A stretch of 64,000 bases of DNA from Pecten maximus (taxonomy: Eukaryota): the NCBI RefSeq assembly GCF_902652985.1, contig NC_047032.1, positions 3,844,001 through 3,908,000 of the forward strand, given 5' to 3'. Within the stretch, counting starts at the first letter, position 1; every line of letters begins with the position of its first letter. Positions 36,110-54,538 of this stretch are shown one piece after another. A model generated the notes under the pieces. That model made no database searches. It was given only the letters and a program-made list of their open reading frames with translations, and was not told where the DNA came from. Position numbers and translations under genes: made by a program.

Positions 36110-36281
36110 ATGAAGACGCTCCACCTTGTCGCCGTGGTATTGGTCGCATATGGAGTACAAATGGTGCTGTCTGACTCTGAGAATGGATCTTCGTTTCCAG
36201 ACCTAACAAGCAATGGATGGGCTTTTATTGCTTGTACTGTGGCAGTTATAATATTTGGATGGCTCTGGTGTCGCTTCACAG
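36110..36281 (+). CDS. exon 1: signal peptide + short spacer + transmembrane helix
   Basis: ttacag|GAGTCACCATG (good Kozak context); MKTLHLVAVVLVAYGVQMVLS-DSENGSSFPDLTSNG-WAFIACTVAVIIFGWLWCRF; CAG|gtatct. Confidence 0.75.
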
Positions 36282-51200: not shown

Positions 51201-53343
51201 AGGTGTGAAAGAATGGGAGAAACGAGAAAAAGAAATTATTGCAAAACTTTGTGGAAATGAATCTGAGTCCAATTATCTGGTCATTACAATTCGTAGTGGA
51301 ATGATTAATTCTTTAAGTGGCCTGGGAAAATTATTTACTAAAGAAAACATTGTTGACCTTAGCCAGTACAAAGAAGACAAAGAAAAACTTGCATTGTTAA
51401 AGTTGTATCAACCAAAAACTGAATTTGTTAAATGGACAGATGATGAGGAGAAACAGATTGTGGCCTCGGCCCCAGACATTGGGTTTCCACAGTGTTGTAG
51501 ATTATTTAGGGACACACCTAGTTTACAAACAGAGAGAGTCAAATTCTTTGAAAGACCTTTGCATTATTTTAAATCCTCTTTATCTAAATTAGAAGACGGG
51601 AAATTTTATGGTCTGCTGTATCTGTTTCTCAAAGGCGGCTCAGTTCTAGAACATGATTTAGACCCTTTTATTGAAAATATTGAAGAAAATGAGGAAATGA
51701 AAGCAGCATTTGCTTTTGATGTAGTAAAAGTAAACCCAACATCTGAGCTTATTTACAAAAAAGAAAAGAAAGCAGAATTTGTAAAGGAGTCATTAGAATG
51801 CCTTTTTGGTTGGCTGGTGAGAAAAGAATCTACACTGTGGAAAAAATGTCCCTTTTACAAATTCAAACACGACTCCATTGAGGAAACAGTGGCACTTCTG
51901 TATGGAGAGAAAACTCCCATTGGCTACATACAGAATTGTCCCAGAAAGTTCCTCAGTTATGTAACTACAACAAAAAACACCCCAAACAGAATAGTTATAT
52001 CATCTGATAATCAAACCAATGCCATGTATAAACGTATAGTGACAGAGTTTCAATCTGTTGATCCTGAAAGTTACTGGTATTTGAGTGAGTATGAATATTT
52101 ATTTAGATTAGATGTATGGACAGACACCCTGTTTTTACAGGGTTTTATCAGATGGCTAAGTGGTCAGAATGATGACAAAAACTTACACCAACTGATAAAA
52201 TGTGCCTTGTTAAATGAAGCTTGCTCTGCTGGTTTAGAAGATCATTTCTCGTATCTCCTTTCTGTGGGTGCCACACCCGACAATAATACACCGTTTATTG
52301 TAGTGGAGGGTGGGAGTGTACGACTACTGACACAAATACTAATGTATGGCGTCATTCCTACAGCGAAGGCACGCGAGTCACAATCATCACATTATACTGA
52401 AGATATCAATGTCCTACACGAGGCTTGTTTGTTTGAGAGAGAAGTGATGGTGACCATGTTGTGTGACACTTACCCAGACTTGGTACATGAGACTGATCGC
52501 TATGGACGAAGCCCGCTCCATCTTGTGGCACGGACAGGAAACGTTGGTATATTTCAGACAGTGGAGAGAATGATACTTAAATCTTTGTGTAGAGTTGAGG
52601 ATGTACAACGTAAGTGTGAGATAGAAGATGGTCGTGTTGTACATAGGAGTTGTGTGTGTGGTCAGTACATGTCACAGTTAGTGTACGAGGACGGGTTTAC
52701 AATATTACATCATAGTTGTATGTATGGACACAGGGTGCTTAGTTTATACCTGTGTGAGTGTTACCCAGCACTAACTACAGCTTTAACTAACGACGGGTGG
52801 ACAATATTACATTGGAGTTGTAGTCAGGGACACAGGGAGCTTAGTTTAGAGCTGTGTAAGTTATACCCAGCACTGACTACAGCTGTAGATAAGTACGGGT
52901 CTACAATATTACATCGTAGTTGTAGGTGGGGACACAGGAAGCTTAGTTTAGAGCTGTGTAAGTTATACCCAGCACTGACTACAGCTGTAGATAACGACGG
53001 GTGGACAATATTACATGTTAGTTGTAGTTGGGGACGCAGGGAGCTTAGTTTAGAGCTGTGTCAGTGTTACCCAGCACTAACTACAGCTGTAACTAACAAC
53101 GGGTATAATTGTCTACATCACATAGCCAGAGAGACATCAGATGTAGACATGTTCACTGATTGTGAACGTCACGTAAAACAGTACGTAGAGAAAACAGGAG
53201 GTAAGTATGACATCACGACCTTACTTACTAAACGTGGGAAATCTGTTTTAGACCTGGCAAAGGAACAGACAGAGTGGGAGAGAATGTTGAGGAAGTTAGA
53301 TAACCCATTGTATGATCATCTTGTCGAGGTGTTTACTAAGTAA
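36110..53343 (+). CDS. NLR-like protein: signal peptide-TM-Ig-DZIP3-like HEPN-coiled coil-STAND (nSTAND3-like) NTPase-ankyrin repeats, 1237 aa
   Basis: Exons 36110-36281, 37979-38278, 41110-41718, 42846-42908, 43884-43967, 46989-47018, 50888-53343. All GT-AG and phase 1; total 3714 nt, open throughout. Confidence 0.8.
36775..37616 (-). mobile_element. HINE-type non-autonomous element fragment (same family as 48258-49879)
   Basis: ~150-bp internal repeats (gggctgacccccaggggcctg); terminal ccaggtgagcgatacaggccctctgggcctcttgtt. Confidence 0.75.
37615..37987. repeat. ~44-bp tandem repeat containing copies of the Ig-exon splice acceptor
   Basis: tttaaattttcag|atgagccta and its variant tgttcag|acaagccta repeated ~8 times; the last copy is the true acceptor. 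Confidence 0.85.
37979..38278 (+). CDS. exon 2: immunoglobulin (I-set-like) domain
   Basis: EPTVEI...VEVGQQAELRCSV...VTW...LII...DEGEYVCTV...TKLTLV; 300 nt, phase 1-1. Confidence 0.88.
38342..39366 (-). mobile_element. HINE-type element (same family as 58657-60768), ~4-5 internal 156-bp units; further fragment at 39715-39970
   Basis: Reverse complement of 58657-60768, including the terminal palindromes. Confidence 0.85.
41110..41718 (+). CDS. exon 3: DZIP3/hRUL138-like HEPN domain
   Basis: TNFARICRLVVD...DLDVSLLYILLRNL...PPHKNGWG..P...DRSLSANIDRLRSQRNEAYGH (Rx4-6H); 609 nt, phase 1-1. Confidence 0.88.
41970..42817. repeat. 38-bp intronic satellite (~22 copies)
   Basis: tatcactatacctttgacaggtgtgtatggatctttgt, with 31-bp deletion variants. 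Confidence 0.95.
42846..42908 (+). CDS. exon 4: coiled-coil heptads
   Basis: ttttag|GGGAAATC...AAAG|gtatgt; 63 nt, EICDVKQRQDEMTTDMDNLK. Confidence 0.78.
43884..43967 (+). CDS. exon 5: coiled-coil heptads
   Basis: ttttgacag|GCACT...GCAG|gtataa; 84 nt, TVDAVSGDVDAVKKDVSDMKQ. Confidence 0.78.
44625..45232 (+). repeat. 89-bp tandem array (~7 copies) derived from a tRNA-like/SINE head
   Basis: First unit starts gctagctcagtcg (A-box-like); each unit carries ggttcacac (B-box-like). Confidence 0.8.
45278..46648. repeat. 49-bp intronic satellite (~28 copies, 42-bp variants)
   Basis: gacccaaagtctagtccagcccctgggaatttagttcactgtcaggatt. Confidence 0.95.
46989..47018 (+). CDS. exon 6: 30-nt micro-exon
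   Basis: ttttacag|GAAGGGATCCTAAGTTGACAGCTATGATAG|gtgagt; phase 1-1, RDPKLTAMI. Confidence 0.7.
48258..49879 (-). mobile_element. full-length HINE/Helentron-type non-autonomous element
   Basis: Hairpin agctcacctggtccgaaggactaaggtgagct, (ccgt)n microsatellite, ~8 internal ~150-bp repeats, terminal caggtgagcg...ggccctctgggcctcttgtt. Confidence 0.85.
50362..50518. repeat. 157-bp near-perfect palindrome, probably the end of a non-autonomous DNA element
   Basis: ~65-bp arms around the centre ataaaccgc-ttc-gcggtttat. Confidence 0.85.
50888..53343 (+). CDS. exon 7: STAND NTPase (nSTAND3-like) + helical/winged-helix region + ankyrin repeats
   Basis: cttgcag|ATACA in frame with ORF 51049-53343. Walker A IIQGNSGDGKS, Walker B VIYFDDIFG, IGFPQCC, YKFKHDSI; ankyrin repeats GRSPLHLVARTGN and GxTILHxSCxxGH; AATAAA at ~53396 and ~53463. 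Confidence 0.92.
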
Positions 53344-53689
53344 ATGTGTTAATTATTCACACTTCTATACACTAACTTGTGTAACATAATGACAAAATAA
53401 ACAGCAACGAACAGAACACTGTGGAAACCTTTTGTGGGGTCATCTTGTCAAGTTTATTTGTAAATAAAAGTACTTAGAAATATTCATACATACCTCTTTA
53501 CCTTCTGTACATTAACTTGTATAACATGGTGTATAATTAAACAAAGATTAAGTTGAAGAAACAATTTATTTTCATCATTGTTCACAAAAACGAACAAAAG
53601 TCGTGAGTTTTAGAAATTTTCTTCGGCGATAGGGGGTGTCCTCGGGTAGGTCCGAGTGAAAGGAAGGTGGTGATACAAATAACCGCCTG

Positions 53690-54538
53690 GTACGGCCCAA
53701 CACAGACTGGAGGGTAGGGTAGGGCCCAACACAGACTGGAGGGTAGGTAGGGCCCAACACAGACTGGAGGGTAGGGTAGAGCCCAACACAGACTGTAGGG
53801 TAGGGTAGGGTAGGGCCCAACATAGGCTGGAGGGTAGGGTAGGGCCCACGCAGACTGGAGGGTAGGGTAGGGCCAAACACACAGACTGGAGGGTAGGGTA
53901 CGGCCCAACACAGACTGGAGGGTAGGGTAGAGCCCACCACAGACTGGAGGGTAGGGTAGAGCCCAACATAGACTGGAGGGTAGGGTAGGGCCCAACACAG
54001 ACTGGAGGGTAGGGTAGGGCCCAACACAGACTGGAGGGTAGGTAGGGCCCAACACAGACTGGAGGGTAGGGTAGAGCCCAACACAGACTGTAGGGTAGGG
54101 TAGGGTAGGGCCCAACATAGGCTGGAGGGTAGGGTAGGGCCCACGCAGACTGGAGGGTAGGGTAGGGCCAAACACACAGACTGGAGGGTAGGGTACGGCC
54201 CAACACAGACTGGAGGGTAGGGTAGAGCCCACCACAGACTGGAGGGTAGGGTAGAGCCCAACATAGACTGGAGGGCAGGGTAGGGCCCAACACAGACTGG
54301 AGGGTAGGGTAGGGCCCAACACGGACTGGAGGGTAGGGTAGGGCCCAACACAGACTAGAGGGTGGGGTACGGCCCAACACAGACTGGAGGGTGGGGTACG
54401 GCCCAACACAGACTGGAGGGTAGGGTAGGGTAGGGCCAAACACAGACTGGAGGGTAGGGTAGGGCCCAACACAGACTGGAGGGTAAGGCCCATCTCTGAC
54501 TGGAGGGTAGGGTAGGGCCCAACACAGACTGGAGGGTA
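53690..54538. repeat. 29-bp G-rich satellite (~29 copies) downstream of the STAND gene
   Basis: agactggagggtagggtagggcccaacac; explains the three repetitive minus-strand ORFs. Confidence 0.96.

Follow-up and report, generated by a model that had tools for sequence, protein, structure and literature searches.

A 64,000-nucleotide stretch of the king scallop (Pecten maximus) genome, contig NC_047032.1, hereafter called the window, contains in the last exon of the gene LOC117316762 a tandem array of 102-bp ankyrin units whose variation is concentrated in six codons per unit. We propose that this array determines the specificity of a ligand-sensing ankyrin domain in a putative NLR-like (STAND) receptor, a reading to which we give a probability of about 75%. 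It is built on the units of the window and of their paralogues, on a structural model of the ankyrin domain, and on a comparison of the array with the rest of the exon.

An earlier note on this DNA had described an ACGGG motif recurring with a period of 102, and a framework interrupted by short strings of variable residues. Both descriptions agree exactly with the sequence and its translation. ACGGG is found at 52691, 52793, 52895, 52997 and 53099, at a spacing of exactly 102, and Tandem Repeats Finder, run on the window, reported a repeat at 52690-53104 (period 102, 4.1 copies, 85% matches, 0 indels, score 571). The array consists of four in-frame units of 34 codons (52678-53085, 408 bp), followed by a degenerate fifth unit, the cap, in which the fifth ACGGG is located and which shares only about the first 25 bases (about 8 codons) of the unit pattern. 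Calling the repeats near-identical was too strong a wording, as the units of the window are only 74.5-87.3% identical pairwise in DNA and 65-79% in amino acids (mean amino-acid identity of 71% for the array, 75% for units 2-4 alone). What did hold is that the differences are placed non-randomly. The four units have the very same triplet at 18 of their 34 codons, and 15 of the other 16 differ in the encoded residue, the last one being silent; 13 of the 30 variable nucleotide columns fall within the 18 nucleotides of the six codons, where 5.3 were expected (binomial p = 9e-4). The predominance of non-synonymous changes in the window itself (15 of the 16 variable codons) is only suggestive, and the strong statistics come from the family. 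Four units offer limited power, and the family of units was therefore analysed.

A six-frame search of the P. maximus genome gave 102 matches, and 128 units were extracted from 26 out of 30 loci. Over these 128 units, entropy reached 2.4-3.5 bits at unit positions 4, 5, 7, 12, 15 and 16, and was below 1 bit at 20 of the 28 remaining positions. Intermediate values of 1.05-1.9 bits were found at eight positions (1, 3, 9, 18, 19, 24, 27 and 28, and marginally at 29). Mizuhopecten yessoensis and another Pecten subfamily (P0008) have their hypervariable positions at the same places, on frameworks of their own: MEVCKYLCESYPALTT in the former and REVCVYLCETFPALTT in the latter, to be compared with RELSLELCKLYPALTT in the window gene and KEMCVYLCEKCPSLLT in Ylistrum. 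Nearly every unit has its own combination of residues at the six positions, with 116 distinct six-residue codes among 121 non-redundant units. Tyr (4.4-fold), Trp (4-fold) and Met (5.8-fold) are enriched at these positions, as are Asn, His and Arg, while Leu, Ile, Val, Ala and Thr are depleted; the enriched residues are those typical of binding surfaces.

Rates of change were estimated in two ways. By the Nei-Gojobori method, applied within the less diverged, young arrays, the proportion of non-synonymous differences (pN) at hypervariable codons was 0.32-0.51, against a proportion of synonymous differences (pS) of 0.02-0.10 in the framework; the corresponding values for the window gene are 0.49 and 0.10. 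The contrast is sharpest in the 12-unit paralogue L003, where 18 pairs of units have at most a single mismatch over the 84 framework nucleotides, and yet as many as 13 over the 18 hypervariable ones. For the second estimate, changes were counted by parsimony on a tree built from 68 unique units, and non-synonymous change (dN) at each position was divided by the global synonymous rate (dS). The ratio was 7.2, 7.0, 9.2, 6.6 and 9.1 at positions 5, 7, 12, 15 and 16, respectively (Poisson p from 1e-19 to 1e-33), about 3-4 at positions 3, 4, 27 and 28 (about 4.1 at position 4), around 2 at positions 9 and 24, and around 1 or less at the remaining framework positions (at most 1 at 20 of 28). To these estimates we added a comparison of unit pairs sharing the same residue: their codons differ in 6.4% of cases at hypervariable positions and in 7.2% at framework positions. 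Mutation is thus no more frequent locally, and only amino-acid changes are in excess. We concluded that the six residues of each unit are under strong diversifying selection, and that the variation at the six codons is due to this selection rather than to hypermutation. The earlier note had called the module recombination-diversified and had proposed a per-codon analysis; substitutions proved to be concentrated and non-synonymous at the six codons, neither evenly spread nor mostly synonymous.

The ankyrin nature of the domain, also put forward in the note, was borne out by Pfam (Ank_2, E = 5.8e-26, with Ank_3, Ank, Ank_4 and Ank_5 all over their cut-offs) and by phmmer, with AnkB (E = 6e-32) and designed ankyrin repeat proteins (DARPins, E = 1e-31) among its matches. 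An AlphaFold2 model of the last 403 residues, computed with 11 paralogue rows, had a pLDDT confidence score of 88 overall and of about 96 in the array, with a pTM of 0.81, and its best Foldseek match was the ten-repeat ankyrin domain of Espin1 (TMt 0.81-0.86). In this model each unit, 34 residues long and not 33, forms a helix 1 at positions 9-15, a helix 2 at 19-28 and a short helix at 30-34. Positions 4, 5 and 7 are placed in the loop, or beta-turn, ahead of helix 1, position 12 in the middle of this helix, position 15 at its last residue, and position 16 in the next turn. The original DARPin design paper reportedly numbered the randomised positions 2, 3, 5, 13, 14 and 33. In a HMMER alignment to DARPin chains, unit position 3 corresponds to DARPin position 1, and unit positions 4, 5, 7, 15 and 16 to DARPin positions 2, 3, 5, 13 and 14, so that five of the six hypervariable positions coincide. 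The internal repeats of the aligned DARPin chain differ from each other at 2, 3, 5, 13, 14 and 33, with one further change at position 10, and six positions per repeat are randomised in the DARPin library (PMC9611651). The claim of the note that the variable residues are largely those randomised in DARPins thus stands for five positions out of six; the equivalent of DARPin position 33 is not hypervariable in the scallop units, and unit position 12 (DARPin 10) is an additional hypervariable one. Position 12 lies one helical turn before positions 15 and 16, and would share their face.

Units also appear to move between genes. Paralogues carry 1, 2, 3, 4, 5, 9-12 or 14 units, and the first unit and the cap keep a fixed position among paralogues of differing unit number. 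Unit 1 of the window finds its best matches in the first units of paralogues (5-7 differences over 84 framework nucleotides), and the framework of unit 2 is 2-5 nucleotides away from units of L003, which lie on a different scaffold. For 82 of 121 units, the nearest framework neighbour was found in another gene. The cap is outside the exchangeable unit set. The exon of the window gene was then compared, segment by segment, with that of four paralogues on C16 (L009, L015, L021 and L024). Nucleotide identity was 78-80% in the NTPase (nucleoside triphosphatase) part, 82-84% in the 200 codons before the array, 94-96% in the array framework, and 85-91% in the cap. Similarly, pS against these paralogues fell from about 0.31, taken over all of the exon outside the repeats, to 0.034 in the array framework. 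The genome contains 96 matches, at up to 3 mismatches, to a 48-nt string copied from the framework of the window; all are in a 102-nt register, they are distributed over C8, C15, C16, C18, C19, C3006 and many unplaced contigs, and 43 of them share one and the same 48-mer. The reversed 48-nt control had 0 matches in the genome.

The higher identity of the framework (94-96%) compared to the NTPase part (78-80%) therefore points to cassette exchange between loci, and the framework is under concerted evolution with such inter-locus exchange. Since the hypervariable codons survive this homogenisation, selection for diversity is required. The recombination-diversified module proposed in the note is accordingly upheld at the level of paralogues, from which all of this evidence comes: repeat number, which the note had suggested looking at, varies from 1 to 14 between paralogues of one assembly, and the DNA of the framework is homogenised, inside the array as well as among paralogues located on several chromosomes. 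The public runs of the species (four runs) are Logan unitigs of 100-300 nt in which paralogues are mixed, with a depth in the array 5-10x that of the flanks.

One paralogue, L022 (G000:C19:29818302-29823521), is a mosaic: its NTPase DNA is 57% identical to that of the window gene, and its 200 pre-array codons are 89% identical, which suggests that a sensor domain has been transplanted onto a different NTPase backbone. L002, on the unplaced contig C429, was considered as a possible haplotig of the window gene and rejected, as its 92.7% similarity ends about 45 nt upstream and about 265 nt downstream of the exon.

The features of LOC117316762 are collected in the table below. The exon carrying the array is 100% identical to residues 390-1209 of isoform X2 (P0001, 1209 residues). 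Statements on domains of the whole protein rest on this public RefSeq model; the last exon was searched separately. The animal STAND protein announced by the note is confirmed by the nSTAND3 domain (PF20720, E = 1.1e-24) of this P. maximus gene and by its intact Walker A and Walker B motifs. NACHT, NB-ARC and LRR were not found by Pfam in LOC117316762, which has nSTAND3 and ankyrin instead. Its product therefore falls outside the strict definition of an NLR (NACHT or NB-ARC plus LRR), and NLR-like is the proper term. Upstream, the R-x5-H motif of the HEPN domain is intact (RNEAYGH in Pecten, RNEVFAH in Mizuhopecten), and the domain is a predicted ribonuclease (RNase). In run X9, contigs were found in which the micro-exon, ending in GCTATGAT, is followed directly by the last exon, with the joint at 50886-50888; LOC117316762, or a very close paralogue, is therefore spliced and transcribed.

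Table. Features of LOC117316762 in the window (positions of the window; P0001 is the public protein model).
Feature	Position	Strand	Basis or remark
Coding exon 1 (residues 1-57 of the public model; signal-like and hydrophobic segments)	36110..36280	+	tblastn of P0001, 100% identity
Ig-domain (immunoglobulin) exon, ends approximate	37960..38283	+	tblastn; Pfam Ig_3/I-set, P0001 residues 60-150
HEPN_DZIP3 exon, ends approximate, with R-x5-H motif RNEAYGH	41094..41735	+	tblastn; PF18738, E = 2.7e-25, residues 224-350
Small coding exon (GEICDVKQRQDEMTTDMDNLK)	42846..42909	+	tblastn; acceptor ttttag, donor gtatgt
29-nt micro-exon (..RDPKLTAMI..)	46990..47018	+	pattern match; flanked by ttttacag and gtgagt
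Last exon: nSTAND3 NTPase, helical linker, ankyrin solenoid, stop codon (53341-53343)	50888..53343	+	2.4-kb open frame, acceptor ccttgcag, 100% match to P0001
nSTAND3 NTPase domain	50932..51396	+	PF20720, P0001 residues 407-561, profile 1-149 of 155, E = 1.1e-24
Walker A, GNSGDGKSS	51001-51027	+	read in sequence
Walker B, LVIYFDD	51151-51171	+	read in sequence
C-terminal ankyrin solenoid, about 10 repeats (403 residues modelled)	52132..53340	+	AlphaFold2 and Foldseek
Low-confidence Cys/His-rich insert between ankyrin repeats (model residues 155-172)	52594..52647	+	pLDDT below 50
Hypervariable unit 1 (LVYEDGFTILHHSCMYGHRVLSLYLCECYPALTT)	52678..52779	+	frame translation; positionally conserved first unit
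Hypervariable unit 2 (ALTNDGWTILHWSCSQGHRELSLELCKLYPALTT)	52780..52881	+	frame translation
Hypervariable unit 3 (AVDKYGSTILHRSCRWGHRKLSLELCKLYPALTT)	52882..52983	+	frame translation
Hypervariable unit 4 (AVDNDGWTILHVSCSWGRRELSLELCQCYPALTT)	52984..53085	+	frame translation
Degenerate C-terminal cap unit (AVTNNGYNCLHHIARETSDVDMF...)	53086..53187	+	conserved in all paralogues and in other scallops

Three details of the gene are worth reporting. The micro-exon was missed by the protein-to-DNA search, and is required for the frame between the HEPN and NTPase exons. The N-terminus of the public model (36110-38283) has a signal-like segment and a hydrophobic helix ahead of the Ig domain, an odd topology for a cytoplasmic STAND protein. 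Finally, the columns C153, C162, H171, C174 and C176 flanking the Cys/His-rich insert are invariant across the 11 paralogues, and the insert may be a metal-binding knuckle.

A mechanism may be proposed for such a receptor. Point substitutions at the six codons would create new specificities in the germline, together with unequal crossing-over or gene conversion, by which whole cassettes would be duplicated, deleted and moved. A non-self or altered-self molecule binding to the concave face would release the nSTAND3 NTPase for oligomerisation; the N-terminal HEPN_DZIP3 domains, gathered in this way, would form an active RNase, and RNA cleavage would then arrest or kill the cell, by analogy with RNase L and with the NLR/Avs receptors. 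A broader possibility, which we hold tentatively and at somewhat less than even odds, is that scallops keep a germline "natural DARPin library" of some 100 or more cassettes, nearly all with distinct codes, which would constantly be duplicated, lost and moved among dozens of HEPN-, CARD- and DED-STAND genes on several chromosomes, and that individual repertoires would show allelic polymorphism both in repeat number and in code.

Several points weigh against our interpretation of the array as a recognition module. The array of the window is only moderately conserved internally (mean 71% amino-acid identity), and its four-unit statistics are modest, with p about 1e-3. The selection and recombination evidence comes entirely from paralogues of one assembly. 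Recombination among units violates the tree assumption of the parsimony count, with the qualification that synonymous counts would be inflated too. Outside the array, pN/pS is near 1 (about 0.75-1 in the non-repeat parts of close paralogues), so that part of the family may be on the way to becoming pseudogenes. Lastly, the signal, transmembrane and Ig segments at the N-terminus of the public model make an odd topology, for which an error of the model may be responsible.

Among the alternatives, the most serious keeps both the architecture and the evolutionary regime, and changes the target: the receptors would recognise not pathogens but conspecific non-self (allorecognition, transmissible neoplasia), selfish elements or fast-evolving host partners. 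Characterised fungal receptors with highly conserved repeats do function in allorecognition (PMC4986451, PMC13449251), and transmissible tumour cells and retroelements are mentioned as possible triggers of bivalve expansions by Kaur et al. 2021 (PMC8195603). On the other hand, there are more than 100 family matches per genome, the swapping of CARD, DED and HEPN effectors among relatives fits the general innate-immunity pattern of NLR expansions in other animals, and somatic fusion does not occur in scallops. We consider this alternative unlikely. Clearly less probable is a recent tandem duplication under relaxed constraint, the six positions being neutrally drifting exposed residues of a structural scaffold. 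Exposed loop residues are generally the least conserved in the ankyrin family of Pfam, and the pN/pS near 1 of close paralogues outside the array goes in the same direction. Neutral sites, however, cannot outpace synonymous sites, and the six codons change non-synonymously at 4-9x the synonymous rate. Units with 0-1 framework differences differ at up to 13 of 18 hypervariable nucleotides, the homogenisation that holds the framework 94-96% identical between loci would erase neutral differences as well, and the composition is skewed to Tyr, Trp and Arg.

Variation so extremely localised, with 2 or 3 nucleotide changes in 63% of differing codon pairs, could also suggest a targeted mutational process writing the six codons, either templated diversification, as with diversity-generating retroelements, or somatic hypermutation. 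Targeted hypermutation was rejected by the same-amino-acid codon test reported above, synonymous codon differences not being raised. No base-specific pattern was evident on reading the codons of the four units (at position 12, CAT/TGG/CGT/GTT), the spectrum not having been tabulated, neither reverse transcriptase nor template repeat was found next to the array in the window, and the variants are germline assembly sequence. We judge such a process very improbable. More improbable still is an assembly artefact, in which reads from several paralogues would have been collapsed wrongly or joined into a chimeric repeat. A framework common to about 96 places of the genome lends itself to such errors, and short-read contigs of other samples do contain many paralogue-derived joints in the array. 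The array is, however, merely 408 bp long with an intact open frame, the arrays of other paralogues are equally regular, and contigs of three other samples (X5, X8 and X9), free of any difference over 52692-52830, carry the junction of units 1 and 2 with its specific codes.

A selectively diversified recognition array thus remains our preferred reading, and the closest known systems are fungal. NLR-like genes with repeats of high internal conservation (HIC) comprise (Dyrka et al. 2014, PMC4986451; Ament-Velasquez and Saupe 2026, PMC13449251) the WD40 genes HET-E, HET-D and NWD of Podospora and the ANK-type Pa_3_8560. In fungal ankyrin NLR-like genes, positively selected sites lie on the concave face and repeat number is polymorphic (PMC4986451). 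The fungal HIC receptors and the scallop gene alike join an effector to a STAND NTPase and to an array of superstructure-forming repeats; in both, the framework is conserved at the DNA level and a few hypervariable codons, on the concave face of the ankyrins, are positively selected; and both families vary in repeat number and exchange repeats between genes, at the paralogue level in the scallop. The scallop gene differs in being animal, in having nSTAND3 and not NACHT or NB-ARC, an HEPN_DZIP3 effector preceded by Ig, and units of 34 residues instead of 33. Allelic repeat-number polymorphism is shown in Podospora, whereas in the scallop number variation is known between paralogues, and unlike in the fungal HIC system no process resembling repeat-induced point mutation (RIP) is known for the scallop family. 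The HIC definition asks for an amino-acid identity of 85% or more between repeats, over 100 residues or more (PMC4986451). The array of the window, with its mean of 71%, is below this identity, while L003 (12 units) reaches 84-85% and P0008 (14 units) 85%. Two further HIC traits were found, namely few positively selected positions on the binding face, and concerted evolution or exchange within and between genes. The 2026 survey reports that highly conserved repeat proteins with ATPase domains, including nSTAND3, occur in animals too, and its text, as far as accessible, names no mollusc (PMC13449251).

Other systems share part of these traits. DARPins and the scallop array have in common an identical, self-compatible framework, diversity in the beta-turn and at the end of helix 1, and dedicated cap repeats. 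The scallop array differs from them in being natural and germline-encoded, with one extra residue per unit and with Cys and Gly at variable positions. RNase L (Anantharaman et al. 2013, PMC3710099) offers a possible analogy: it also associates an ankyrin array with a HEPN-superfamily domain, of the KEN type, and is a sensor-nuclease which needs dimerisation or oligomerisation and whose output is antiviral RNA cleavage. It differs by a pseudokinase in place of the STAND NTPase, a conserved ligand (2-5A), the lack of hypervariable ankyrins, a reversed domain order and a single copy. Lamprey variable lymphocyte receptors, made of LRR cassettes, share with the scallop array solenoid repeats, diversity of the concave face and the copying of cassettes, but are assembled somatically from flanking cassettes in lymphocytes, whereas the scallop variants are all germline genes, with no evidence of somatic change.

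The domain vocabulary of the scallop gene is not new either. Fusions of DZIP3-type HEPN to ankyrin, CARD and NTPase, with expansions in oyster, have been on record since 2013 (PMC3710099), and Kaur et al. (PMC8195603) treated in 2021 the expansions of bivalves that involve HEPN, Ig, STAND and ankyrin. The animal DZIP3-HEPN and bivalve STAND/TRADD-N expansions have the same vocabulary, with lineage-specific expansion in bivalves and with effectors swapped from one paralogue or species to another. The accessible text of both papers describes architectures, and hypervariable codons, DNA-level homogenisation of the framework or cassette exchange are not reported in it. Word-indexed protein searches found relatives only in Pecten, Mizuhopecten, Argopecten and Ylistrum, plus two weak ankyrin proteins, in an index which needs shared 5-mers, so that this is no evidence of absence elsewhere. 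The architecture and the evolutionary regime are therefore already known; the scallop family is a well-quantified additional animal case, the hypervariable-cassette regime being the added value.

Some observations on relatives and flanking DNA complete this description. The loci L012, L017, L025, L026, L007 and L016 end before the hypervariable array or carry in-frame stops, and are truncated or pseudogenised; the array of L016 is the same as that of L002, and the stops of L016 are in its NTPase part. A second type of repeat, of about 55 residues (LLNKAC.SGS.EC.LYLLS.GVKPD...), is present in a single copy in the window gene, at about 52190-52350, whereas P0031, P0029 and P0037 (Ylistrum, Mizuhopecten) have up to about eight copies of it ahead of the hypervariable array. 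Five Mizuhopecten proteins (P0014, P0018, P0019, P0022 and P0023) have long runs of a 7-residue repeat (DVGAVKE/DVGAVRD) between HEPN and NTPase; these runs differ greatly in length among paralogues and are absent from the window gene. A 29-bp satellite is located at 53689-54538 (29 copies, also with a period of 295), about 350 nt past the stop codon. The same satellite flanks the paralogues L004 and L008, and the duplicated segments therefore include it. Within the last intron are a 157-bp tandem repeat at 48440-49487 (6.6 copies, 79% matches) and a 65-nt inverted repeat at 50362-50518 (97% complementary, 27-nt loop), about 370 nt before the acceptor, which looks like a hairpin of the MITE type (miniature inverted-repeat transposable element).

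How invertebrates, which have no antibodies, achieve broad and fast-evolving recognition is an open question, to which the scallop family provides an answer that is compact and within reach of experiment. The code consists of six residues in each 34-residue unit, and the scaffold is of a type with good folding and expression; cassettes are open to comparison, swapping and screening in the manner of DARPins, and the effector, as a predicted RNase, would be simple to read out. The association of a conserved framework, hypervariable codons and cassette exchange is extended here from fungi to a named animal gene family. Selection and inter-locus homogenisation have both been quantified, and the result speaks for a single diversification strategy having evolved convergently in STAND receptors. 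Should the tentative library hypothesis be true, scallops would hold an anticipatory repertoire specific to each individual, and the fungal HIC-NLR system would have in this family its first animal equivalent to be described in detail, in this case connected to an RNase effector. For scallop aquaculture, the array loci are candidate determinants of disease resistance.

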